Shown here: positions 1,655 through 31,921 of the stretch, in pieces
Position numbering within the stretch: position 1 is the first letter of the stretch
How the letters are laid out: every line of letters begins with the position of its first letter
Origin: Cyanophora paradoxa CCMP329
Taxonomy: Eukaryota > Plantae > Glaucophyta
DNA length: 64,000 nucleotides
Direction: 5' to 3'
Assembly: GCA_004431415.1 (NCBI GenBank)
Contig: QPMI01000569.1
Coordinates: 124,001 to 188,000, forward strand
Program-made: the position numbers and the translations under genes
The notes under the pieces: generated by a model
What the model saw: the letters and a program-made list of their open reading frames with translations, nothing else
What the model was told of the DNA's origin: nothing
The model's database searches: none

Positions 1655-4600
1655 ATGCCGTCCACGGGCGACGGCGCTGCCGCTGGCGCTGGGCCAGCAG
1701 CGCCATCGCTGTCCGGCGCCATCGCCGCGCCGGCTGCGATGGACAAGCTGGAAACGGGCTCGGTCCATTCGGCGGCCACCGGCACGGAGTCGCAGATCCG
1801 TGCGTCTGCCGAACCGCGCAGCGCGCAGGCCGGCCGGCCGAGGCGGCGCGCGCCTGCCGCGACCGGCCGGCTCGCGCGCGCCCCGGCCTTCGGGCAGCTC
1901 CGGCTTGATCGCTTTCCCCCGCGCGCCGGGCACGCGCAGTGATGGAGATGGAGGGGCTGCAAGAGCGCAAGACGGTGCGCGAGCCTGCGCTGCCGGCCTC
2001 GCTGGGGCCGCGCCGGCGCCGGCCGAGCTCCGAAGTTCTCACGCGCGCGGGGCCCGCAGGAGGACGCGCTCTTCGGAACCCTCTTCACAATGACCTCCCG
2101 TTCGCCCCGCCGCTCGCGCCGCCTCCTGAGCGCGGAAATCGCAACTTATCATGACCCGGGCCCGCAGGAAACTCCCAGACCAAGACCCGCCTCTCCACCC
2201 GGTGCGTCCGACCACGACCTGCGAGCGCGCCGCGCCACGTGCACGTCTCGCACCGCGCCTGACCGCCGCTGCGGGCAGAGTCGTGGTCTTCCTCTTCTTC
2301 ACGCTCCTCGACTTCGTCCAGCTCATCGGCCTCGCCTACGACGACACCGTCTGGCACCCCGACGTCGTCGGTGCGGCCCCCCGCCGCCGCGGGCTCGAGC
2401 TCGGCGCTGTCTTGACTTGGCTCCGGCTCCGGCTCCGCAGGCTGGCTCGCGTTCCTCTTTGAGATCAGCCGGGTTCGAGCCCTTGCGCATGCGGCGCCCT
2501 CTCTCGCCTTCCGGATCCGCGCTGAGGCCGGCCCTTCCCGCAGCGGCTGAACGCGCTGGGCCGCATGTGGATGGTCGCTTTCTACTACATCGCCGCCATC
2601 GCCGTGCTGAGCGCCATCGGCCTCCTGATTTACGTTGGATTCCTCTTCAAGGTGCGAGAGGGCCGGGCGCCTTTTCTCTCCATATAGCTACCCGCTTCGG
2701 ACTTCCGTTGAGTGAGAGCTTCGTCCGCAGCGCGACCGCTTTCAAATGTTTCCGGTGAAAGCGCTCCGCATCCTCGTCACGATCCTCGTGACGGTGCGAC
2801 TCCGCCGCTGATCTCTGAGCGGCCTCCGCCCTGCGCGTCTGATAGCGTCCCGGCGCTGCAGGCGCTCTACATTACGGTGCTGGAGATCCTCATCTCCCCC
2901 TTCGACTGCGTCTTCTCGGGCACCTGCCTCGAGCTCAGCAGCATCGTCCAGGCGAGCCGCCCGGCTCCGTGCACGTGCCTCGTTCGGATCCAATATTCAT
3001 CCGGCTCCGAGCAGATGGGCATCTCGTTCATCCTGCTGCTCGTCTTCATGCCCTTCTGCCTCCTCATGTCCCTCGTCTTCCACGACCATGAGGTGCCCGC
3101 TGCCCCGGCCCCTGCTTCCTTTCTTTCGTGCACCAATTTCGGCCACGCAGACTCACTCGCCGGACCTTGAGTCCCGTGAGTCGCCATCCGCGCCCCGCGC
3201 GCCCGCCTTGCCGGCGCCGGCGCGGCTGACGCGCGGCAGGGCCGACCGGCCGCGGCGACCTGCTCTACCTCGCCTCCCGTACGGTCCTCGTGCTCGCCCG
3301 CCACTTCCTCTGGCCCTACAGGCGCGCCGCCGCGCACCCGCCCGTCGCTTCCGAACTGACGCCTCTCATCCCGCAGCCCGAGCCTCGTCGGTCTGCTGGT
3401 CGCCGCTGCGTCGGGCCTGCAGGCCGGGTACACGGCCGTCTTCCTTCCCTACTACCGCCGCTCCATCAACACCTTCAAGGCCTGGCTGTAAGTGGCGCGT
3501 CTGCGACCTCCGAATCGCGATCTCAGAGGGCGCCGCTGCGCAGGTTCATGGGAGCGGCGGTTTTCTCGCTGGGGACTGTGGCGCTGCGGAACGCGACCGC
3601 TGACGGCCGCTACGCCGCCTCCATTGCCGTCCTCGTCGCCCTCGTGCCCCTCGGCGCCATCGGCGCCCTCGTCGCAGGTGCCCCGTCCACGTCCTTTCTT
3701 AGGGCAAATGCACTCGGTCTGACGTCTCTCCGCCCATCAACGGCAGAGTTCCGGCACTACCGCATCTCGCGGGCGTTCCTCAAGATCCCCGCGGCGCACG
3801 CCTCGGTGCTGGTGGCCGGCGGCTCCTCGCAAGAGGAGGCGTCGGCAAAGGCCGCCGCCGCCGCCGCCGCCGACCTCGCCGAGGTGCGAGTTCCTTCTTT
3901 CCCGCGACCCTTCCGGAACATTTTGCACGATTCTCGCGATCTTGATTAATATTCTTGCACAGAGCACGCACGGTGGTGGCATGGCGCGGGCCCTCGTCCG
4001 TCGCGCCCGCACCGTCACCAAGTCGATCTCGACCCTCGGCGGCCCGCTCGCCGCCGCCATCTTCGACAACGGCGACGACGGCGATGGGCACGAGCCCGGC
4101 GCAGGCGGCCAGGGGCCTTTCCTCCTCGAGCAGGAGGTCGAGGTGCGCCGCCGCTCCCCCGCACCCGATGGGCCCGCGTGACTGACTCGTGCGACAGGTT
4201 GCCGTTCGCTTCCTGCGGCTGACGCGCCACCCGAGCGCGGGGCTGCTCGACGCGGCCGAGGCCGTTTACAAGCGCGGCATGCAGCAGTTCCCCAAGGTGC
4301 GGGGGGCTTTCGCAGTTTCGCGAGACGTGTGAGCTCCTCTAACGTGTCCCCTTTCGCAGAGCGCCTATGTGCGGTGCGGCAAGACGTGGATCCGCCTCAC
4401 TTTCATCGCAAATGGTAACGCTGTCCGCCCACAGGATCACGTACGCGAGCTTCCTGCAGAGCTACCGCAAGAACGTCCCCGGCGGTGCGGCCACACCGGC
4501 CCCCGCGCGCTGCGCGTCGGGCTCTCGGTCGGCTGACGGCGGCGGCGGGCGCAGCGATGGTGGCGCTCAAGGACGCGTGGCAGCGGAAGCCGCCGTTCGA

Positions 4601-7600
4601 CCAGCGCTTCTGGCTCTCCTCCATCCGCCGCTCGTGGGAGCAGATGAACCAGGGGCAGTCGGCCGGCCAGGGCGAGTCCCTCTCCTTCATCAAGGTGCCC
4701 CCGGCCCGCCTCCCCCTCGACTTTGTCCCTCACGCCTGGCCGCGCCGCAGATGCTCGAGTTCAAGCGGCTCCTGACGGTCACCCAGGCGCACCACAACCA
4801 GGTCCGCAGACCGCTCGGAATTTTCGTTGGCTCTCGGCGCGCGGCCAACGCGGCTGCTCTGGACAGGCGGTGGTGCACGTGCGGGCGTTCTGGCGCGGCC
4901 TCGCCCGCAAGCGCGTCCTCCTCCCCGCCGTCCTCGATAACGTCGGAAAGAAGCTGGAGGAGATTCGCAAGGTGGGCACCGCGCTGATGCCGTCGCGCCC
5001 CTTCAAATTTATGCTCTCCAAGTCTCACGTTCATGTTCAGGTCAAGTCGAAGGCTGATGAGGGCTACCGCCGCCTCTTGAGTGCGCCTCCCGCAGCTGCC
5101 CCCTCGATCGCCCGCTTCTCGGCGCGGCGCCTGACGCCGGCCGCAGCGCAGTACCCGCGCTCGAAGCTGCTGATCCGCTCCTACGCGGCCTTCCTCCTGC
5201 ACGTCGGCAACGAGGCAGAGGCCGCCGCCGTCCAGTTCGCCAAGGCCGACGAGATCGAGGAGGTGCGTCTGTATGCGCGGTGATATCGACAAATGGACGA
5301 GGCATCCTCGTTGCATGCCGTCCACTTCAATCAGTACTAAAGATCTCGATGGATGTTGCCAAATTGCCAGATCTGACGCTTCTGCCGCGCTAGGCCGAGA
5401 TGCGTGAGCGCCTTGCGAACGGCGGCGGGGGCGGCTCGTCCCTGGGCACGTCGTCCCAAGGCACCAGCGAGGACAAGGCCTCGGAATCCATCGGGTCCTC
5501 CAGCCACTCTTCCTCCGCCAAGCGCAAGACCGGCAACGGCGACTTCGGTGCGGTCAAAGAGTGTTACGGTTGAAATCCGGCGAGGGCTCACGCAGTTCCG
5601 CAGAGATCATCCAGCAGGAGAATGGCGCGATGAAGATTCTCAAGTTCGGCATCGTCGTCGGCATCGGCGTCCTAATGGCCCTCTCCGCCGTCAGCTACGG
5701 TCCGCCCACAGCGACGGCTTTTCGCGCCGCGAAAATCGCCTCTGATGCCTCCGTAGCGGTAATCCGCGACCTGTTCGGTGGCTACGACCAATCCGTCAAG
5801 CGCAACAAGGGCGTGATTGCACTGCTCCGCATGATCCTCGAGTGCGGCCTTCCCACTGCCTTGCGCCTCCGCTAATGGCATCGATGTCATTTCCGACTCG
5901 AACTGCGCAGGGCGTGCCACCAGACGCGCACGCTGAACATTGCCGCGCGCGAAAACGACAAGGCCGCGATGGATGAAACGGTCACCAACCTCGCCACCAT
6001 GTCCGAGGCGAGTTTTAAAACTGCCTTTGTACCGTTAACGTTATTATTATTACTTGATCTCTGGCCGAATCATGACGTGGCTGACCGTCCGACGGTTCTC
6101 GCAGACCTTCCTTGATGCTTTCCGCTCCATTTACATGGGAATCAACGGCGTGACACGCTCGAACGACGCTGCCGTGAACCGTCAGTCTTTTGGGCTTTAT
6201 CCTGGATCGCCTTGCGTAAATCGTTTCGCCTCATGCAGGTATGTGGACCGACCAAAACGTCCGCATGCAGGTACGCGGTTTGAGTCGCGTTGTGAAATCC
6301 GCCTACCCGCTCCGCGCTAACGGCGCCATCGGCAGAAATACGTCAGCATCCCGCCGGCGCACTACGTCGACACGTACACGTCGCTCTGGGTGCGTCGGCG
6401 ATGGATCCCGAGACCATTGGGACCGTCATCTCACCGGCTTCCATCGCAGGACGCCGGAAATCTCTTCGCGACGAAGGCCCGGCAGTTCTCCCACAGCACC
6501 GTCGCTGGTGCGCACGATTCAAATGGAAAAGAGCCATCGGTGCATCGAAATTCTGAGCGTCCGCTCCGCGTGCAGACTGGAAGGACGCGCACGCGTCGGA
6601 CCTCTTCCGCTACGTCACTCGCAACGGTGCGAGAGCGATGGCTTTCGCTGCGAAATTCGCTTCTTTGTTGACGCGGCTGCGCGCAGCCATGTACGGCTTC
6701 CAGCAGGCGATGGAGAGGGCCGCCAACACGTACCAGCTGGAGGTAATTCGCGCAAAAGGAGAATAGAAGGGGCTTGGGGCCAGCGCGTGCAAGGCGGATG
6801 TTGCACATGTACATTTGAATAGACTAACGGCGGCGCTCCGCTCGCGGCGAGCAGACGTTCGTGAAAACGGACAGCTCTAAGGCGATCCTCGGGACTCTGC
6901 TGGCTCTCTTTTTAGGGACTATCATCTCTCTAATCCTCGGAGTGTTTCGAGTGCGCTGCTTGCTGCCATTGACGCGCCCCCTCCCCCTCGCGCATTTGGG
7001 GACCGCCTTCACCACTCAAGACCTACGTTAGCACCTCCAGCAGCAAAGCCGTGCTAGGGGTTTTGCTAGCTCTGTTCGTCTCGACCATTGCGGGCCTCAT
7101 CCTGGGCCTGCTAATGGTTCAACACACCCGCCCCCGCCCCCGCCCCCGCCCCCCACCCTTCAGATTCGGCCACCCCGCGGCCGCCCATCCGAAATCAGAG
7201 CTGCCAGAGCAAGCGGCCCCCGCCCGGGCCTGGAGCTCTCCACGCCTAACCTCGCCTCTTGACTTTCGCGTCGACAGCCGAGCGCATTAGCCGATAATCT
7301 CTAGAACTTCGATGCCGCATACTAGTCTCCTGGTCTAGACCTCTGACATCCGTCTCGTCGTGCGCGACAGCCCGCCTTCGCGAAAGTGCGCAAGAACCAG
7401 CGCGGAGGTGCCTGCGCCCTTGCCGGCAGCTGCGTCCAAAGGCGCCCGCCTGACGCCACCGCGCGCGCAGTCTCCGACATCCTCCTGGCGATGCCCCGCG
7501 CCCGTGCGTGCCGATTGCAGCCCGATCCGACGTGGCGCCCCGGGCTTTTCCGTCGGTGGCTGAGGCGCCGGCGCAGTGATGCGGCAGCTGAGCCGGCACT

Positions 7601-10600
7601 ACGCGCACGTTCGCATGGTGGGCGACCGCGCCGAGGACTCGGACCAGGAGAGCTCCGGCGGTGTGCCCCGCCCCGCCCAAACCACAGCAATTACATAATT
7701 AAAACAATAGCCGCCTATATGGCCCCGAACCATTCAACCGCCGATTTGGGAACTGTAACTTTTGAGTTCCGGATACCGGACGAATCCCTCAACGATTTTT
7801 AATGGCCTTCATGAGAATAATACCTTTATGGCTTCGTTTGCGAACCGTTCATCCGCTTATTTCACCATAAATGACCTTGAACGGACTTGAACCTTTAATT
7901 TGAACCTTCCTTCAACTGCATCGGCAGTCGGCTTCGATCCTCGGCTGACGCTCGGGGGGTGGCAGACGAGGCGGAGAGTTCGAAGAAGAAGAATGACGAG
8001 TCCGAGCACGAGGGCGACGGCGAGCACAGCGGCGCCGAGGGCGCGGAGCGGCCGATCACGGCGGAGAACCTGGCCGCAGGGCCGGGCGCCCCGCGCAGCT
8101 TCCTGGAGGAGGCCGCTATGAAGGCGGAGAAGAAGAACCGCCGCAAGAAGGCGCAGAAGTACGAGGGCGCGTCGCAGTCCGAGGACGAGGCGTCGGGCCG
8201 CGAGCTCGCCCGCCGCGAGCGCGGCTCGGGCTCCGAGGCCGCCGGCAAGCGCGGCGCCCACTCCGACCGCTCCCGCAGCAGCAAGTGCGGCCCCGCCCCT
8301 CTCCCACGCGGCCCACCGCCCGCTGACCTCGGATGGTCTAATCAGGGGCAAGGACGGCGAGAAGAAGGAGAAGAAGGAGAAGCGGCACGAGCGGGCGCGC
8401 TCGACGGGCCCCGGGTCCCGCTCGCGCGTCGCCCCCGAAGCCTCCGGCGACAGGTCCGCCCGCTGCCTCCGCGCAGCGCCCCGCGCGGGTGCGGCGCGCC
8501 GACGCTTCGGCGCCGCAGCTCGAGCGAGGCCGAGGGCGGAGCGCGCTCCGAGCGCGGCCGCAAGCGGGAGACAGAGGAGAAGAAGGCCGAGGCGGCCAAG
8601 GCGCGCTCCAAGTCGGCGCCGGCCCAGGCGCCCCTCTCCATGGAGAACCTCCAGCGCCTCGGCTCGGAGGCCCCCGGCCAGGCCCGCCCCGCCTCCCGGC
8701 CCGCCCTGCTACGGCTGCGCTCTGACCTTGCATGTCCTCGCAGGCGGCGCTTCGGCACGTGGCGCTGCAGCAAATGCACCGCCGGCGCGCCGCCTCGCCG
8801 GCCCGCCAGGAGCCGGCCCTTCTCGAGGATGCGTCCGTTCACGCCGGCGCCGCGCTTCCGGGCGTCCCGCCGGCGGTGCCGGAGGCCGGCGACGCGCGCC
8901 CCGCGTCGCGCGGCTCGGCGGCCGGCTCCGGCTCCTCGTCGGCCCGCCGCCGCTTCCTCCCCGAGCTCGAGACCCTCCTCGCGTGCGCCGTCCGCCGTCC
9001 GCCGCCCCCGCGAGGCTCACGGGCGGCGGGCAGGCCGGAGCCGGAGGCGCCGGTGGCGGTCATCGCGACGGGCCACTTTGCGGAGGGCGCCGTGCTGCCC
9101 GACGGCTCCTTCGACTCGAGCGCGAGCGGCAGCGCCGGGAACCTGCCCTCCTTCGACCAGGGCTCCGCCTCGCCCCTGTCTCCCGATGACAACACCAAGG
9201 CACGTTGAACGCTGCCAAGCGCGGCTCGCGCGCCCACGACACCAACCGCGGGCGGCAGGTGGAGCCTGTCTCGGACGGCGAGTCGTCGAGCACCGACACT
9301 GTGGGCCGCGAGAAGCGCGCCGCCGCTCGCGAGCGCTCTCCGCCCCTCCCCATCGGCGGCATCCTCCGCAAGTGAGCGGCCCCAAATCAAACCGTTGTTC
9401 GCCGCCCGCCGCGCACCCCATGCCACTCACTCGGGCTTGTGCTCTCGCTCAGCGGGTCGTCCCACTCGCGCACCCGCTCGCATTCCCATGGGCACGTGTT
9501 CGCTGCCGCTGCCGGCGCACCCGGGTCGATGAGCGAGCGCCGCCGCTCCGTCAATTTCGACCCCGTGCGTCCCGTAGCGCCAAGCTCAAAGCCGCCCTCC
9601 GGGGGTGACGCCGGGGGTGCAGGAGGACCTGTCGAAGGGCGAGTCCAAGGGCCTACACCGCCGCGAGCGCGACCCCGCGACCGTCAAGGACCCCCTCGCC
9701 GAGATCCTGGGCGGCGCCAACCTCTGGGCCCCGCCCCCGGACATGCCCCTCGTGCCCGTGGTCCCCAAGCCGGCCATCAAGCCGCACAAGAGCGAGGAGA
9801 AAGACAAGGATCATGCACGCGGCGACAAGGATCACAAGGATCACAAGGAGAGCAGCAGCGACAGCGACGACGACGAGAAGAAGAAGGCGGCGGCGGCGAA
9901 GAAGAAGAAGCATGACGCCGAGATGGCGAAGCCGGCCGTCAACAACCTCCTCACGTCCCTCACCCGCAAGTACCTCACCTGGTTCTTCATCATCGCTGTG
10001 CGCGGCCCGCACGCTCGCTCGCTCGCGCCCTCGAGCTCGACACCGCTGACGGCGGCGGCGCGGCAGGCTGTGATGTCGGCAAACTTTGCGCTCTGCTTCT
10101 TCTTCATGGACCAGGGCAAGACGGCCTCGATGGAGATCAAGTGCGCCCGCGCCGACCCGCGCCGCGCGGCGCGGCGGGCGGCGGCGGCTGACGGGGGCGC
10201 AGGTACGGCGGCACGCGCCGCGCCGTCGTCCGCGAGCTCGCCTTCCTCTCCCGCGAGCTGTGCGCCCCCGCCCCGCCCCGCCCCGCCCCGCCCGAGCTCT
10301 GTTTGTCCACTGTCTGACGCCCGCCCCCGTTCGCCTTTGCCGCCCGCTACAGGTTCATCAACGACGATCTCGTGCGTTCCGTCGCCCGCGCTGGTTTCTA
10401 GATCTGCGCAGTTCTCACGCCCCGGCGCCAGATCATGCCGTTCAAGGAACTGAAATCACGCCTCGAATCGCGCATGCTCGAGCTCCGCACCATCCACGGT
10501 GCCCCCGACTCCTCACCTGTCTAAACATCTTGCCTCGTTCTGACGTGCGGCTTCGCAGCGGGCCTCAAGTACGGCAACGAGACGATGGGCCTCCCCGGGC

Positions 10601-11712
10601 AGAACAACCGCTACCAAAAGCTCGACGACCTCATGTGCGCGCGCCCCTCCCCCTCGCACCCCCCGCCCCGACCCACGGGTGTTTCGCAGGTACCTGCCCT
10701 CGTGCCTGCTCGACAACCAGGCGGCGTGTGATGCCCTGTCGCCCGAGCGGAAGGACGCCTACAACTACGGCGTTGACAACCTCGTCGCAGTCTTCCTCGA
10801 CAAGGTACCCCGTTTCTCTCTTGCATCCTGACGCGCCATCCTGACGCGAGACGGCGCCGCCAGGTCACCGATATCCTCAAGGTAGGCGTTTCACCCGACT
10901 CGACCCGTCGCCCTCGTTGCGCGCCCGCTGACGCCGTCGCGCGCGCAGGAGGCGGACTGTATCGAGCGGAACTGCGATGTGGCGTCGACCCTCTCCCGCG
11001 CTACTTCCCAGTCCTACGCCTTCATTCAGGAAAGGTGCGCGCTCCATGGATGCACACTATCACAGCCACCCCTTCTCATCGAACAGTGCATTGATATTAT
11101 TCTGTGCAGCTATGGGTTCCTTGACGCGGGCCTGGGCAAGTGCATTGACCTGACTGTCGAGGAGAGCGTCTCCCGCATCGACGTCGTCTACGTCGTCGAG
11201 GGTTCGGGCCCCGCCGCGACCCTTCTCCACGGGCTCTGCGCTCACCGGAACTCTCTCCGCAGGCGTCATTCTCGCCTTCAACATTGTGTCGCTCGCGAGC
11301 CTGTACCTCTTCATGTTCCGGTACCCCCCGTGCCATCCATCGCCCCCGGCCGCCGCTGACGAGTGGTCGCAGGCCCATGATCAAGCAGCTGGTCATCCCC
11401 GCCCCTCGCATCTTCGGCCCTCGCCATCGAAGCCGCTGACCGCCGGCGCGCGCAGGACGACGAGTCGACGCGGCGGGCGCAGCTGCTCGGCATGTTCCCC
11501 CGCGTCATCATCAAGGACAACGCCTTCCTCCACAAGCGCGTACCCCGCCCGATGTCCGCCCACCCGCACCCCTCTGACCGGGGGCCGGCTGCGGGCGCAG
11601 GTACTTCCGCGGCGGCGCAGGCGGCGGCTCGGACGAGAGGAGGAGGGGCAAGGGCGGGGACCACTCGGACGGATCGTCCAGCGAGGACGAAGACAAGGAG
11701 AAGGACAACTGA
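1655..11712 (+). CDS. TmcB/TmcC-like (tiny macrocysts family) large multi-pass membrane protein, paralog 1; dozens of short exons
   Basis: N-terminal multi-TM block (FFTLLDFVQLIGL, LYITVLEILISPFDC, FMPFCLLMSLVFHD). TPR-like region (AEAVYKRGMQQFPKSAYV; QYPRSKLLIRSYAAFLLHVGNEAEAAAVQFAKADEIEE). Then two TM-ectodomain-TM modules (LKYGNETMGLPG...C...C) separated by a charged disordered linker. Stop TGA 11710-11712. Start ATG approximate; family assigned by motif recognition, not a search. Confidence 0.75.
6855..6950 (+). other. Candidate mutually exclusive exon A of paralog 1 (TFVKTDSSKAILGTLLALFLGTIISLILGVFR)
   Basis: 96 nt, CAG acceptor at 6852-6854, GTGCGC donor at 6951, phase 0/0; homologous to 7021-7116. 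Confidence 0.75.
7021..7116 (+). other. Candidate mutually exclusive exon B of paralog 1 (TYVSTSSSKAVLGVLLALFVSTIAGLILGLLM)
   Basis: 96 nt, AAG acceptor at 7018-7020, GT donor at 7117, phase 0/0; ungapped homolog of exon A. Confidence 0.7.
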
Positions 11713-24142: not shown

Positions 24143-27100
24143 AGACTTCTTCTTCCTCATCAGCCTCACCGGTGCTGCCCCCTGCCCGATCCGCCGCGCA
24201 GCGCCCAACCACGTCGGCGCCTGCTCCTTGAGCTCACCCGCCCGCCGGCGCAGTGAACAACAACTCGTGGGAGCCCGCTATCATCGTCTGGCTGAGCGCG
24301 ATACAGAACTCTCTGAAGGTGCCCCACTCTTATACGCACACACTCCCCCCCCCCCCCCCCCTCCCCGCGCCTCCCGCCCCCGTCCTCCGCCTTCTTCCCC
24401 CCAACTGCCGGGTCGTTCCCGCTTTCCCCCGCCAAATGCCCCCTCCCCCAACCTCCCTCCCCCCCCTCCCCCCCCCTCCCCTCCCCGCGCTCCCAGCCTT
24501 CCCCGAACAGTGACGCTCACGGGCGGCGTGCGCAGATCTACTTCAGCGTCTCTGCCACGTGGGTGCGGCGAACCGGGAATATTTATGCAATCGCGCCCCG
24601 TCTTTTTGCCAACTGCTTCGGGCCGCCGGCAGATGTTCTGGATGGGGTGCGCCTCGGTCCTGCTGACGGGCGTGCTGTGCGGTCCGCGGCGGCCCCAATC
24701 GCAGCCACGTTCTTCACGCGCCTTGACTGACGCGACCCGCACGCGCGCAGCGTACGCGTGGCAGACGTTCAAAACGAACCACTTCCCTCTCGGGTCCGCA
24801 CTGAGCATCCCATTCGAGCCTCGCGGCTGCTCCTCTAGATCTGCGTCGACGTCGCGGGGGGGTACCGGCGCTGAGGCGGGGCGCCTCTGGAGCAGGATCT
24901 GGCCGATCAAGCTCCTGCGCGTGGTGGTGAAGCTGCAGCTGACGGCCGGCTACATCCTCCTCCTCAAGCTCTTCGCCTCGGGCCTCCTCTGCCAGGTCAA
25001 CTCCGTCACCCACCGTGCGCGCCTCCGGCTTTGCCCACCCGACGCCCGAAAGCAATGGCCGGCCCTCGCCCGCGCTCACTCCCCCGCGCAGCGGCCGCCG
25101 CCAACCAGCGCTGCCTCGCGTTCCCCAACGTGGTCCGCGGCCCCTCCCGCCTTCGAGGCTCCCCGCGATCCTCTGAGGGCGGGGGCGGGGGCAGCTGTAC
25201 CTGGGGGTGGCGCTGCTGATGCTGCTCTTCTTCCTGCCCCTCTGCGCCGTCCTCGCCCTCGTCTACCACGACTCGAACCCCCGCAGGCGCGTCCCCCGCC
25301 CGCCCCGCGCTGCTCTGCCGGGGGCGAGCATCGACGCAGCATCGACCCGGAGGCGCGCGTGCACGGCCGCGGCGAGCTCCTCTACCTCGCCGTCCGCACC
25401 GTCCGCCCCGCCCCGCCCCGCCCTGCCCCACTCCGCCCCGCCCCGCCCCGCGTGTGGCTTGTCGTCATCCTGCGCCGCGCAGTTCGGGGTCTTCTTCAAC
25501 ATGTTCTTCCCGTCGGAGGCGCTCATCAACTTCTCCATCGCGGCCATGACCGGCGCCGCCGCCGCCTACTTCGTCCTCGTCCAGGCGCGCCGGCCGCGGC
25601 CCCGCAGCGTCCGATCCGCGCCTGTTCGCGGGCTGAGAGCGGCATGGCCGTGGGGCAGCCCTTCTACAACGCGCGCTCGAACGAGTTCCGGATCGGCCTC
25701 CTCTGCGCCGCCTGCGTCTTCTCCCTCAGCTCCTTCGCGGTTCGAGCTTGCAGCCGAGGCACTGGGCCGGGCCCCGCCCCCGCCCCCCTCTGACGCTCGC
25801 GCCGCCCTCGCCGCAGCTGGGCTTCGTGGGGAGGCCGGGGGAGCTGGGCAAGGTGGCCGCCTCGGCGCTCTGCATGGCCCTCGTCGTCGCAGCCTTCCCC
25901 CTCGGCATCCTCGCCGCCCGTGCGCCCCGCACGCGCACGCGCACCCAGATCTAGACGCCTCTGATGCCGCCTCCGCCCGTTGTCCCACCGACGTCGTCGG
26001 CAGGCGCGCGCATCCGCATGCTCTCGCGCCGGCACCGCCCCAGCGCCTCCTCTTCGTCCCCGGGCCAGGCGCCGGTGCCCCGCGCAATTCAAGAGCGTCC
26101 GCTGAGGCGGGGGCAGGTGGCGCCCGGCGGGCTCGAGGGGCTCGAGGGCTCGCGCCACGGGGCCCTGCGGGCGGCGCCGGCGCCCCTCGTGCCGGCGGTC
26201 TTCCTGCTGGACACGGACGTGGAGATTCTCACCCGCTTCCTCCGCGACGCCGCCACCCCCGCCGCCGTCGACGAGGCCCGCGCCGTGCGCCGCCGTTCAT
26301 AACTCGTTTGTTTCTTGCGCGCTTAGCTCCCCGCTGCTTATCCGGCCTCCGGATGCGTTCGCCGCCGCCAGATCTTCCTGCAGGGCCTCGCCCAGTTCAA
26401 GACCAGCAGCTTCCTCCACCTCACGTGCCCTCCCGCGCAAGTTCGAAGGCCGATCGCCGATCTCTCTCCGACGTCGACGCCGGGCGCCGCGCAGGTTCGC
26501 GAAGTTCCTGGTGACGTACGGGTCGGACTCGCAGAGCGCGCTGGCCGAGCTCAAGGTCGCCTGGTCCTGCAAGGTCCCGCCCCCGCCCCGCGCCGCGGGC
26601 CCCCGCGCGCAGCCGAAGTCCTCTCCGCGCACGCGCAGCCCAAGTTCGACATGCGCTTCTTCCTCTCGTCGATCCGGCGGGACGCGGAGCAGCAGGCGCA
26701 CTCGCAGAGCGTCGGGGACTCGGTGGGCCTCACCTACGTCCAGATCCTCGAGTTCCGCACCTTCTACGGCAAGGTCCGCCGGCTCCGGTGGCTGGGCGCG
26801 ACGCCCGCGCCGACACCCGCGCCCGCGCGGGGGCAGGCGCAGGCGGCGCACCAGAAGACGCTGCAGCTGCTGAGCCGCTTCTGGGCGAGCCTGCGGCGGG
26901 CGAGCCTCAGCGCCCCGGGCGTCCTCGACGAGGTGCCCGCCACGCAAACCGCAATCGATCGCGATCGGCGCTCTCAGACGCGGCACGCATGCGCTGCAGG
27001 TGCACCACCGGCTGGAGGAGATCCGGCTGCAGATGGACGCGGCGCAGCGGGCGTACGCCTCGATCCTCTCCAAGTTCGGCACCTCGAAGGCGCTGCTCCG

Positions 27101-30100
27101 TAGCTACGGCAAGTTCTGCGAGGACGTCCTCGTCGACCCCGAGGCGGCCTCCACCTTCTACCGCAAGGCCGACGAGATCGAGCACAAGCAGATGCTCGCC
27201 CGCCGCGCCCAGCAGAAGGGCCTCACGGGCGCCGACGCCGCCAGCGTCAGCGAGAGCGAGAGCTCCAAGCGGAGCAGCAGCCAGGGCAGCGCCGCCGCCG
27301 CCGCGCGGTGCGGTCGTCTAGATCTCATCCTGCTCCGCTCCGTGCACGTGCTCTCTGACCCGGCTGCTTCTGCGGCTGCAGGCGGCGGCGGCGGCCAGCG
27401 TACGTGCTGGCCCACAAGGAGACGAAGGCCGTCAAGAAGCTCTCGTGGGGGATCCTGGGCGGCATGCTGACGCTGGTCGTCATCGGCGCCGTCCTCTTCG
27501 CCGTCTCCAAGCTCCTCAACACCGACTTCAGCAACCGGTGCCGCTCAGCGACACGCTGCGCCTGCCGGCGCTGCTCACGCGAGCACTTTTGCCGCAGCGT
27601 GGCGCACTCGCGCGTGATATCCATGGAGGCCGCCTACCTCGCGGTGCCTGCCGTCCGCTGCAAATCCTTTCGCCAAGCCATAGATTCGAATTCGTGCGGC
27701 GCCCGCGCCCGGCGCGCGTCCGACATCGCGCCCGGCAGGACATGCTGTACGGGGCGCGCTCCCTCTCTATGCTCGCCGCCAACGTCTCCGCCACCGCCGC
27801 CCTCCTCGGCCCCGGCCCCGGTGCCCGCCCCCTCCCCCCTTCCCGAGCCCGAGTGCGCCCTTCACCCTCTCCCCAGGTGCCGGCGCGGGGGCGGGCTGGA
27901 ACGAGACGGTGGCGGCGGCGGCGTACGAGCGGGGCGTCCGCCGCTTCGTCGAGAGCATCCACGAGTTCGAGCACCCGTCCGCCCCCGCCCCGCCCCGCCT
28001 TGCGCGCTCGATTCCATCGCTGCTTTCGTTGTACTCAAGCCCGCCCGCGCCGCAGGTTCATCGGCCTCTGGATCTTCGCGTACTACCCCAGCGACATCCG
28101 TGCGCGCTGCCCCAGACCCGCCGCGCCGCCCCGCTCCAACGCGCCTCGCGCGGCGCAGCGGTGGTCTCGGACGCCGTGATCAACGACGTGTGGACCAAGC
28201 GCCCCGTCCAGCTCGTCAAGGTGCGCCGGCCTGCTCCGCGGGCCCCTCGGGCGACCTCAAGGCACCGACGGACCGGCGGGCGCAGGTGGAGAGCACGAAC
28301 CCGCTGAGCACGCGCTCGCGGCCCCTCGCCCTCTACGGTGCGCGCGCCCCGCCCCGTCCCAGGCCTTCGCATCCTCCTCCTTCTGGGTGTTCACGCCGCC
28401 CGGCCGGCGCGCCCTGTCCTCGGCGCAGACGCGGTGAGCCTGCTGATCAAGGCGGCGCGGGACTTCGCGCACGGCGGCCTCGAGGCCGCCGCCGACCCCG
28501 CCAACAACGTCGCCTTCCGGTGAGGCCGCCGCCACCGAGCATTAATGTTAGCAGCGAATTGCGCTGATCCCGGCCGCGCGGGGCCCGGGCGCGCGCGCAG
28601 GAGCCTGGTGGTGAACGCGCTGGAGCAGATCGTCCCGACGCTCGCCAGCGTCAGCCACCTCGTCGCCGACCGCGTGCGCCCTGCCCGGCCCCGCCCCGCC
28701 GGCCATAGCCGGCGAGCCCGCCCGAGCCGCTCGCGCGCGGGCGCAGCTGATCGAGGCGACGGGGACGAACCGGGCGGCCGTCTGCGCCCTCTTCGGCGTC
28801 AACGTCGGCTTCGTCCTCTTCCTCTGCCTGGTCCCGGCCCCGCCCGCGCCCCCCGCCCCGCCCCGCCCCGCCCCCCTCCGAGCGGCGGGGGCGCGGCAGG
28901 CGGTGTTCGAGCCTGCGTTCCGCTCGGTGGCGAAGAACCAGCGCGGCGTGCACGACATCCTCGAGTCCCTCCCCCGCCACTTCTTCAAGGCGCCCCCGCC
29001 CCGCCCCGCGCCCTTCAGCTGTGGCCTCTGGGCGGGACTCAGGCGTGCGCGCGGGGCCGGGGCGCAGGAGCGGGCGCGGCACTACAGCAAGGCGAAGGCG
29101 TGCTTCGGGGCCGACGAGAACGACCAGAGCGGCGTCGACGAGGCGGAGGAGGAGCGCCGGCTCTCCCCCCGCGCCCCCCGCGCCAGCCGCCGCGCCCGCC
29201 TCCGCGGCGCCCCGCCCAGCGACGGGCCCACCTCGTGCGCCCAGCCGCCTCGCTTTGTGTGGCTTGGCGGCTGACGCGCCGGCAGGGAGGAGGGGGACGA
29301 GAAGGAAGAGGAGGGGCAGGAGGAGGAACAGGCAGGGAGCGAGGGCAGCCGCGGCGGCGGCGGCCGCGGCGGCCGCGGCGGTCTCGACCTCGGGCTCGCG
29401 CCCAGGGCGTCTCCCGTGGTGCTCGGGCCGGAGCCGCCGACCCCGGCGAAGATCGCCTCCGGCGGCTCGTGGGAGGGGCGCACGCTGGTGGAGAGCATCC
29501 GCATCGGCTCGCAGGGCGAGCTCGTCGGCGTGCCCGGGGACGCCTGGGGGGCCTCGACCCCCGCCGTTGCCATCTCGAGCCTGGGCACGGCCCCGGACTC
29601 GCAGCCGGCGGGAGCGGGTCCTCCCGGGAGGCGGCGGGGCAGCTCGCTCTCGAGCGGGAGCGGGGCGGGCGGGGCCGTGGCCGGGGCGGCGCTGGCGATC
29701 GCCTCGGCGGGCCTCCTCTCGGCCTCCTCCAGCTCCCAGACCGACTCCTTCGAGACCAAGGCATCCCGCGCTCGCTTCCAGCTCGCTCGCTTCCGGCCTC
29801 GCTTAGTTTGACTTCGCCTCAGGTCTCGTCGGGGGACGGGCGCGAGGCGGGCCCCACGGGCCTCGGGGGCCCCGGCGGCTCGAGCGCCATCCCCTCCGTC
29901 GCGATCCTCCGCCGCCGCTCCGGGGGCGGGGGCCCCCCCGGCCGCGACGAGGCCGGCACCCCCGGCCCGGGCGCAAAGGTCGGCTTCCCCGCCCCCTTCG
30001 CCGTCGCGGTGCGCACGCGCGCGCCGGTCCCGCGCCGCGCCGCCGGTCAAAGCCGATCAGAGCCGACGGGGGACACGCGTGCGCAGGCCGCGCGGGCCTT

Positions 30101-31921
30101 CTCGCTGGGGGAGCTGGCGGCTCGCGGGGTCGCCCTCGACGACCTCCCCGTCTCATCTCCTCCTCCGGGCCCGGGCGACGGGGCGCAGGCGGACGCGGAG
30201 GCGGAGGCGGAGCTCGAGCTCGAGGGGCTCCTGCGCAGCCTCGGGCCCGCCCCGCCTCCACCCCGGGCCCCCGCCCCGCCCATGCTCTCCTCGCCCTCGC
30301 CGAGCCCGACGGCCCCCCGCTGCGCCCCGGGAGGCCTCCGCCGCCCCGCGGAGGGCGGCGGAGGCAGCGGCAGCGGCTCGGGCGGCTCCGACTCGGACGA
30401 GGGCGACGCGGCCTCGCCGCGTGTGGCCGGGGCCCTCTGAACGCCCCGGCACCGGGCCCCGCGGCGGCGGCGGCGGCCGCCGCTAAGAGCTCGAGGGGCG
30501 CCAAGCCGGCGGCGAAGGCGCGGGCGCGCCGGCCCCTCCTCCGCCCGCCCCCGCTGAGCCGGACGCGGCGGGCGGGGCGCAGGGGTCGGAGTCGGTGGGG
30601 GAGGCGCGGGGCCGCTCGATCATCGCCGCGCTGCGGCGGCGCTACCTCTCCGCCTTTGCCGTCATCGCCGCCATCGCCGCCGCCAACTTCGCCGTCGTCC
30701 GCCCCGCCGCCCTCGCCTTCTACCGCCCCGGCCCGGCGCCCGAATAGAATTCGACATTGAATCTGATGGCCTCCCCTCGCCCTTGGCGCCGCTCACCGCG
30801 CCGACCCCTTCGCCGCGCCCCGCAGAGCTTCTACTTCGTGTCGTTCATGGCGGCCTTCGCGAGCGACGTCCTCTACGCCACCGAGCGCCGCCAGCTCGCA
30901 CAGAGTCCGCCCGCCCCCGCCCCGCCTCCCCTCTGCGCCTTCTCCCGTGTCTGACTTGGCGCCCCCAGCCGCCCTCTTCTACGCCCGCGAGGTGCCCTCT
31001 CGAGCGCCTTGGGGCGCACGCGCCGCCTCGCTTCGCTCACGCGGGGCAGGCGTTCATCGAGGACGGGGTGCTCGGGGGCGGGCGGGAGCGGACGCTCGCG
31101 CGCCTCGCCGCCACCGTCGACTCCCTTGCCGCCATCCACGCCGGTGCTCGATCTGAGGGGAGCCTGGGGGAGGCAGGGCTAACTGGAGCCGGCCCGTGCA
31201 GGCCTGAAGCACGGGAACGCGACGCTGGGACTCATGGGCGCCGACAACCGCTACCTGCCCCAGGACAAGCTCAACGCGCGCCCCGCCCTCCCCCCGCGCT
31301 CGCACCCCGCCCACCGCCTCTTAGCGTCCCGCGCGGGCAGCACTACCCGGTGTGCTCGATCCAGCCGGCGCGGTACGGGGGCGACCCCGCCGACATCGAC
31401 ACGCGGGACGGACGCTACGGCCTCCCCTGCCCCTTCGCCACCCCGGAGGAGCGAAACCTCTACGGGTGCCCGCCCCCCGCAAACAGAGACAGACAGAGTC
31501 TAAACGCACGCGCCGGGGCCCGGGGCTGACGGGAGGGAGGGCGGGCGCCTGCAGGCTGGGCCTGGACCCGATGATGCAGACTTTCCTCCAGTGGCTCGGC
31601 ACCGTCCTCGGCGTCCGCCCGCCCGCCCGCCCAGAACGTTTACTTACTCGACTCTGAACCATCGGGCGGCCTCGCAGGGGGAGACGTGCGTGAAAAACCG
31701 GTGCTCGAAGGCGGGGTGGGCCCGGCCCCCGCACGAGTCCCCCGAGCTCGCCGCCCTCGACCGCATGTGGGCCGGGTCCGCCCCCGCCCCCGCCCTCCCC
31801 GAAACGGACGGCGCCTCAAGCTTGGGGCGGGGCGGGCATCGGCAGGCACCTGCGGGGGGCGCTGGAGGAGTCGATTGGGCTCTTCTTCGAGGAGACCAAC
31901 GCCAAGCTCGCCCTCGGTCCG

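Follow-up and report, generated by a model that had tools for sequence, protein, structure and literature searches.

A tandem pair of homologous exons for one membrane helix in a TmcB-like gene of Cyanophora paradoxa, a candidate for one-or-the-other splicing

TmcB-like genes and a duplicated helix exon

We analyzed a stretch of 64,000 nt from contig QPMI01000569.1 of the glaucophyte Cyanophora paradoxa CCMP329, referred to here as the window. It consists of GC-rich eukaryotic DNA, and both its composition and its very short introns match what was published for this species, namely, a GC content of 67.6% and a mean intron length of 86 bp (PMC6704402). Three TmcB-like paralogs adjoin in the window, located at 2500-10700 (+ strand), 24500-31300 (+ strand) and 20900-14100 (- strand). 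The collinear blocks common to all three are an N-terminal membrane part, the TPR_TmcB domain, a PAF..KNQRG stretch and a C-terminal GLK.GN..GL motif.

The first of these genes was rebuilt from RNA joints and loose ends as 20 exons between 4555 and 8285, all on the + strand, and comprises 593 codons with no stop when exon B (see below) is included. Its exons were searched against Pfam one by one. The exon at 5147-5262, the ends of which are given by RNA joints, probably contains the end of a TmcB-type TPR domain: its 38 residues (5149-5262) matched PF25474 TPR_TmcB with an E value of 1.9e-5 and 25 bits, against a cut-off of 27, over positions 84-120 of 125, which is the last third of the profile. 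A stretch of a paralog (27015-27260) scored 40.6 bits with the same profile. A preliminary description of this DNA had named the product a TmcB-like receptor that couples an ectodomain to a signalling helix. The domain match, slightly below its cut-off, agrees with the first half of this name, whereas the receptor function and the coupling were guesses. A literature search on TmcB returned no paper on the function of the family.

Hydrophobic segments resembling membrane helices were observed at two places. The exon at 5604-5699, defined by RNA joints, encodes about 20 residues of hydrophobic sequence and has a GC3 of 0.90, and about 210 residues separate this helix from the second one, which is the subject of this report. 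Exon U (6687-6742) lies upstream of the latter, ends in ...YQLE, has the atypical donor GTAATT and is delimited by the joints 6626>6687 and 6742>7021 in the runs X1, X3 and X7 introduced below. Directly downstream of the helix, exon D (7371-7407, PAFAKVRKNQRG) encodes a basic stretch homologous to PAFRSVAKNQRG of both paralogs; its position follows from RNA contigs and the reading frame. Exon D is followed by a long, charged tail of low complexity. The second helix is best explained as the last membrane helix before a cytoplasmic tail.

Several further features of the gene model were recorded. The tail between 7966 and 9605, a long exon or a run of exons, is rich in K, E, R and S, and a 569-codon open frame extends over 7899-9605; RNA contigs cover the tail up to 8285 within the region mapped (4500-8500). 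An intron at 6008-6104 (97 nt) is of the GC-AG type, with RNA joints in all four mapped runs. Very small exons, supported by RNA joints or loose ends, were found at 6239-6270 (32 nt), 7471-7503 (33 nt) and 5041-5080 (40 nt).

Two candidate exons for the second helix are present between U and D. The sequences bordering exon A (6855-6950) are CAG upstream and GTGCGC downstream, and those bordering exon B (7021-7116) are AAG and GTTCAA, respectively. Both exons are on the + strand, measure 96 nt, contain no stop and are in phase 0/0, which is consistent with the RNA-verified reading frame. We thus reproduced all coordinates, translations, lengths, phases and AG/GT boundaries given for the pair in the preliminary description. 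The two exons align without a single insertion or deletion and are identical at 53 of 96 nt and 20 of 32 residues, with 12, 9 and 22 differences at codon positions 1, 2 and 3, respectively. As had been proposed, the DNA has diverged while the protein pattern was kept, with an excess of changes at third positions. The ungapped BLOSUM62 score of the pair is 96, whereas every other 32-residue stretch in the six frames of the 64-kb window scored below 35, and the DNA alignment surpassed 499 of 500 shuffles. Exons A and B are therefore true duplicates whose likeness is not due to chance, and, lying next to each other with the same length and phase, they have the arrangement that marks mutually exclusive pairs. 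A small residue occupies segment positions 13, 17, 21, 25 and 29 in A, in B and in paralog 3, and this run at every fourth position looks like a helix-packing face. The copies differ at the ends of the helix, which carry the charged residues K, D and R in A and no charges in B, and also on the face opposite to the small-residue run.

Neither of the two other paralogs in the window contains the exon pair; each has a single copy. The preliminary description had stated that they carry exactly one 32-residue segment at this point, which holds for the copy number but not for an unbroken exon, since an 84-nt exon is followed there by a predicted intron, and the four final codons of the segment (AVFE) are found beside PAF on the exon after it. 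The donor in both paralogs (28829-28900; 17046-16961, - strand) is thus placed 12 nt earlier than that of A (6947-6950), with paralog introns assigned from GT..AG and CTGAC signals only. An additional intron (7408-7470) lies within KNQRG|V in the gene with the exon pair and is lacking in the paralogs.

The introns removed around B measure 278 and 254 nt, as compared to 56-131 nt for the other short introns of the gene. The intron after B (7117-7370) contains a C-rich repeat (7126-7160) and a CTGAC motif 24 nt from its acceptor, and its 254 nt correspond to about three times the genome mean of 86 bp (PMC6704402).

Exon usage in RNA contigs

To follow exon usage, we made use of public runs of the same organism. 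Eleven RNA-like runs were found; each contained 14-18% of the sampled words, a share to be expected if exons alone are represented. Four runs from three studies (X1, X3, X7 and X8) were mapped on positions 4500-8500. All four consist of assembled contigs, and these derive from RNA because they contain spliced GT..AG joints. Rare forms get lost in contigs, so that a minor form with exon A could escape such data.

The joint 6742>7021, which connects exon U directly to exon B, was present in the contigs of X1, X3 and X7. Each of these runs contained a 158-nt contig in which the whole of B is flanked by 35 nt of U and 27 nt of the next exon. This contig continues by 28 letters that fit positions 7370-7397, which places the start of the next exon at 7371, the joint itself being absent from the listed joints. 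The RNA joint and the contig run-on are in agreement with the earlier proposal that the upstream exon ends at about 6742 and that the downstream exon starts at 7371. In run X8, this part of the gene was not covered by any contig. Exon B is the default exon, and its splicing into mRNA was seen in the cultures of three studies.

Exon A was found in none of the contigs of the four runs and three studies, and contig depth was 0 over 6778-6911; the depth of X1 and X3 contigs in the bin 6912-7045 is wholly explained by B. In the contigs of the runs covering the locus, no A-to-B joint (6950>7021) was detected, and 6742 was the sole donor joined to B. The two exons were never observed in the same mRNA, and A was skipped by 6742>7021 in every run that covers the locus. 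Constitutive inclusion of both exons is refuted by the joint between U and B, and the earlier claim that A and B are not spliced together held in three studies. The junctions anticipated for a switch were recovered in part: 6742>7021 was seen and 6950>7021 was absent, as expected, but the joint 6742>6855 was also absent from the contigs. The proposal of a mutually exclusive switch is accordingly supported in that the two exons are not joined to each other, whereas a transcript containing A appeared in none of the four runs. According to the preliminary description, the proposal would fall if only one exon ever appeared in transcripts, the other being a decaying duplicate. As far as contigs show, only B appears, but the notion of decay does not fit the sequence evidence presented in the next section.

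Sequence variants were noted in X7, which belongs to another study. One of its contigs has GAGG for CTGG at 6737-6740 (YQEE instead of YQLE) and is likewise joined to B; the run also lacks 3 nt at 4667 and differs in several single letters (5217-5495, 6506). The variants stem from another strain or allele, or else from a second gene copy that is nearly identical. Such an allele or copy probably accounts for the fact that the exon B contig has the same break points in every run. We had considered these break points as a trace of a branch that contains A, and dropped this idea in favor of the allele or second copy, which fits better given that the GAGG variant is also joined to B.

The search for relatives was uninformative with regard to exon A. 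A protein-database look-up for transcript fragments was blank for A, and this carries no information because the control with B was blank as well. A profile of A and B run against 1.84 billion representatives returned a single match, an unrelated bacterial repeat protein, indicating that the Cyanophora protein is absent from this library. A metagenome scan with the same profile gave 213 pattern matches and no relatives. Across the protein libraries and metagenomes, no relative from another species was found with which conservation could be tested.

Divergence and retention of the two copies

Considering that only B was seen in RNA, we asked whether A bears the marks of a decaying copy. At synonymous sites, the divergence of A from B has reached saturation (pS 0.76), whereas pN is 0.32. 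Because synonymous sites are saturated, recent gene conversion is ruled out as the cause of the likeness. Third positions differ at a frequency of 0.69, as compared to 0.72 expected for unrelated sequences. The intronic sequences adjoining the two exons were copied along with them but have lost any alignable similarity to each other (z 0.6 and -0.5), whereas the exons themselves still align (z 4.2). In a simulation of neutral decay starting from B, with 0.54 substitutions per site, a helix-like peptide was kept in 0.3% of the trials, and at least 20 of 32 identities were kept in 0.24%. A comparison of dN/dS between the copies, which had been suggested earlier, thus pointed to constraint in the contrast of pS and pN, while the formal likelihood test of "A neutral since duplication" gave a p value of 0.07-0.10 on 32 codons only. 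Both copies appear to carry the marks of long purifying selection, in line with the earlier statement that the protein pattern was kept in each of them.

The single-copy paralogs allow the differences to be polarized. At seven sites, two derived residues were assigned to A and five to B, with the reservation that the paralogs are distant and that their 32-residue segments each span a predicted intron of their own (28 + 4 residues). The residues "VF" precede PAF in A and in both paralogs, whereas B has "LL". By this comparison with the two paralogs of the window, A looks like the more ancestral copy.

The GC3 content is significantly low in both exons, amounting to 0.625 in A and 0.75 in B, as compared to 0.92 in the other 551 codons of the gene and 0.58-0.67 in nearby introns. 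These values would fit part-time translation of both exons, with A used more rarely, and would fit equally well an exon A that is never translated now. Sequence evidence alone does not separate a recent loss of A use from its continued use. Nevertheless, the retained length, frame and helix character of A are not those expected of a copy in decay, and our verdict on these features is that A and B derive from an old tandem exon duplication and were probably retained by selection.

Splice signals, possible readings and known systems

We compared the splice signals around A and B with those of the verified introns of the gene. The usual donor in these introns is GTGCG, and the acceptor is CAG in 16 of 18 and TAG otherwise. 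In a motif scan of the verified introns, most acceptors had a CTGAC-type motif 11-24 nt upstream, separated from the donor by at least 37 nt. The acceptor (CAG) and donor (GTGCGC) of A score inside the range of the 18 other introns, whereas the acceptor (AAG) and donor (GTTCAA) of B each score below all of them. The U donor (GTAATT) is also below all 18, and the acceptor at 7370 is below the range as well. Weak sites around a cassette of this kind are typical of regulated splicing. An exon with ordinary signals is skipped and one with weak signals is used, and some active control would therefore be required whether A is still in use or not.

The motif scan revealed a branch-like CTAAC for the acceptor of A (6824-6828, + strand), 27 nt upstream of it. 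For B, there are two candidates. The first is TTGAC (6969-6973, + strand), which is followed by a C-rich tract and has its candidate branch adenine at 6972, 21 nt after the donor of A and 48 nt before the acceptor of B; the spacing of about 20 nt reported in the preliminary description is thereby confirmed. Since likely branch sites elsewhere in this gene lie at least 37 nt from the donor, a steric block on splicing from A to B is plausible. The second candidate is TTCAC, 9 nt before the acceptor, and if this is the branch site of B, there would be no steric block. C-rich tracts with CGCCCCC repeats follow shortly after the donors of both exons (6975-6989 for A, 7126-7160 for B) and may be the last trace of a duplicated intron or may serve as pyrimidine tracts. 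Folding of the pre-mRNA over 6700-7420 was not unusual (z 0.28), and no conserved RNA structure was found there. Short inverted repeats occurred at the level expected by chance for GC-rich DNA.

We prefer, with about even confidence, the reading that A is still a working alternative exon of this C. paradoxa gene and that A and B form a real one-or-the-other switch. An old tandem duplication would have generated two copies of the 96-nt exon for the last membrane helix, of which A may be used rarely, or under conditions other than those sampled, in place of B. Either choice would keep one helix and the same topology. One-at-a-time use makes sense because inclusion of both exons would misplace the tail to the opposite membrane side. 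Exclusivity could be achieved by spacing: if B uses TTGAC at 6969-6973, the donor of A would be too close for an intron from A to B, so that only the acceptor at 7370 would be left for it. The U donor, both ends of B and the acceptor of D are weak sites and would be of the kind usual at regulated exons. The swap would exchange the residues at the helix ends, charged in A and uncharged in B, and those on the face directed away from the small-residue run. A more specific form of this reading is offered tentatively and falls somewhat short of even confidence, namely, a regulated switch of a single helix in the TmcB-like scaffold of a glaucophyte that is enforced by crowding of donor and branch point, as in animal tropomyosin.

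The strongest competitor, which we rate as a serious possibility though below an even chance, is that A is a silent relic, either a former alternative exon or the original one, that B took over and that decay is not yet visible. It would account for the finding of B alone in the contigs of four runs, for a GC3 of A close to that of the surrounding introns and far under that of the gene, and for a test of past selection on A that is not significant by itself. It is less easily reconciled with the branch site, acceptor and donor of A, which look like those of an ordinary constitutive exon and are stronger than those of B, since good sites would be expected either to lead to inclusion or to be lost from an exon that is out of use. 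Furthermore, A is no more diverged from the paralogs than B, and it acquired neither stops nor indels while its flanks were randomized.

Inclusion of A alongside B in a fraction of transcripts is very improbable; two successive extra helices would then flip the tail across the membrane. An A-to-B intron of 70 nt would be within the size range of the gene, the TTCAC motif could serve as its branch site, and the frame would hold with two exons in phase 0/0; however, A is in no contig, the sole joint into B comes from 6742, and the basic stretch of exon D directly after the helix fits a fixed cytoplasmic side. Slightly less probable still is a chance likeness or a non-coding role of A, for example as a splicing-control element for B. 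In its favor, hydrophobic stretches are easily found in the open frames of GC-rich DNA and A sits within the long intron before B, but the A-B score is unique across six frames of 64 kb, the differences are concentrated at third codon positions, and a control element needs no frame, helix or splice sites.

The TmcB/TmcC family (PF25474 TPR_TmcB) was named after the "tiny macrocysts" proteins of Dictyostelium. The present gene resembles this family in having a probable TPR_TmcB domain followed by membrane helices and in lying side by side with several paralogs, and differs from the two other TmcB-like paralogs of the window in its exon pair. If the preferred reading of a switch is true, the A/B helix would be marked as functionally important in an unstudied family, which would provide a handle on TmcB function.

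Tandem exon duplicates that are unannotated or silent have been described (PMC9013439), as have extra copies of sodium-channel exon 5 (PMC12772994). Exon A is similar to these in that it sits in an intron beside the copy in use and lacks transcript support. It differs in having splice signals that are stronger than those of the used copy and in its more ancestral appearance, which are unusual properties for a dead copy. If A is never used, it would be a clean case of a duplicated exon that has outlived its use with splice signals better than those of its working twin, and a silencing mechanism would be needed as an explanation.

In animals, duplicated exons are widely known to act as switches that tune channels and receptors, as in exons 8/8a of CaV1.2 (helix IS6) and exons 5N/5A of sodium channels; to our knowledge, such switches are barely documented in algae. 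Mutually exclusive exons that arose from tandem exon duplication in animals have been reviewed (PMC9013439, PMC9741552). Like these, A and B are homologous neighbors that agree in length and phase, provide two alternatives for a single membrane segment, and stem from an old duplication in which the protein pattern was kept. Unlike in the animal pairs, only one of the two exons was seen in RNA, and the pair occurs in a unicellular glaucophyte whose introns measure about 60-130 nt and in which splicing is thought to act across introns and not across exons.

In alpha-tropomyosin, exons 2 and 3 exclude each other sterically because the branch point is too close to the upstream donor. The present pair is similar in that B may use a distant branch-like site with a long C-rich tract, located 21 nt from the donor of A. 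It differs in its much smaller scale, with a spacer of 70 nt between A and B, and in that the branch site of B is a candidate motif only, the second candidate of which (TTCAC, at 9 nt) would lift the block. If A is used, a single-celled glaucophyte with very short introns would make two versions of a helix from one gene and keep them apart by a simple spacing rule. Switching between homologous exons and its enforcement by spacing would then extend to a deep-branching plant lineage, and this kind of feature, known from animals, would gain a new member in a glaucophyte.
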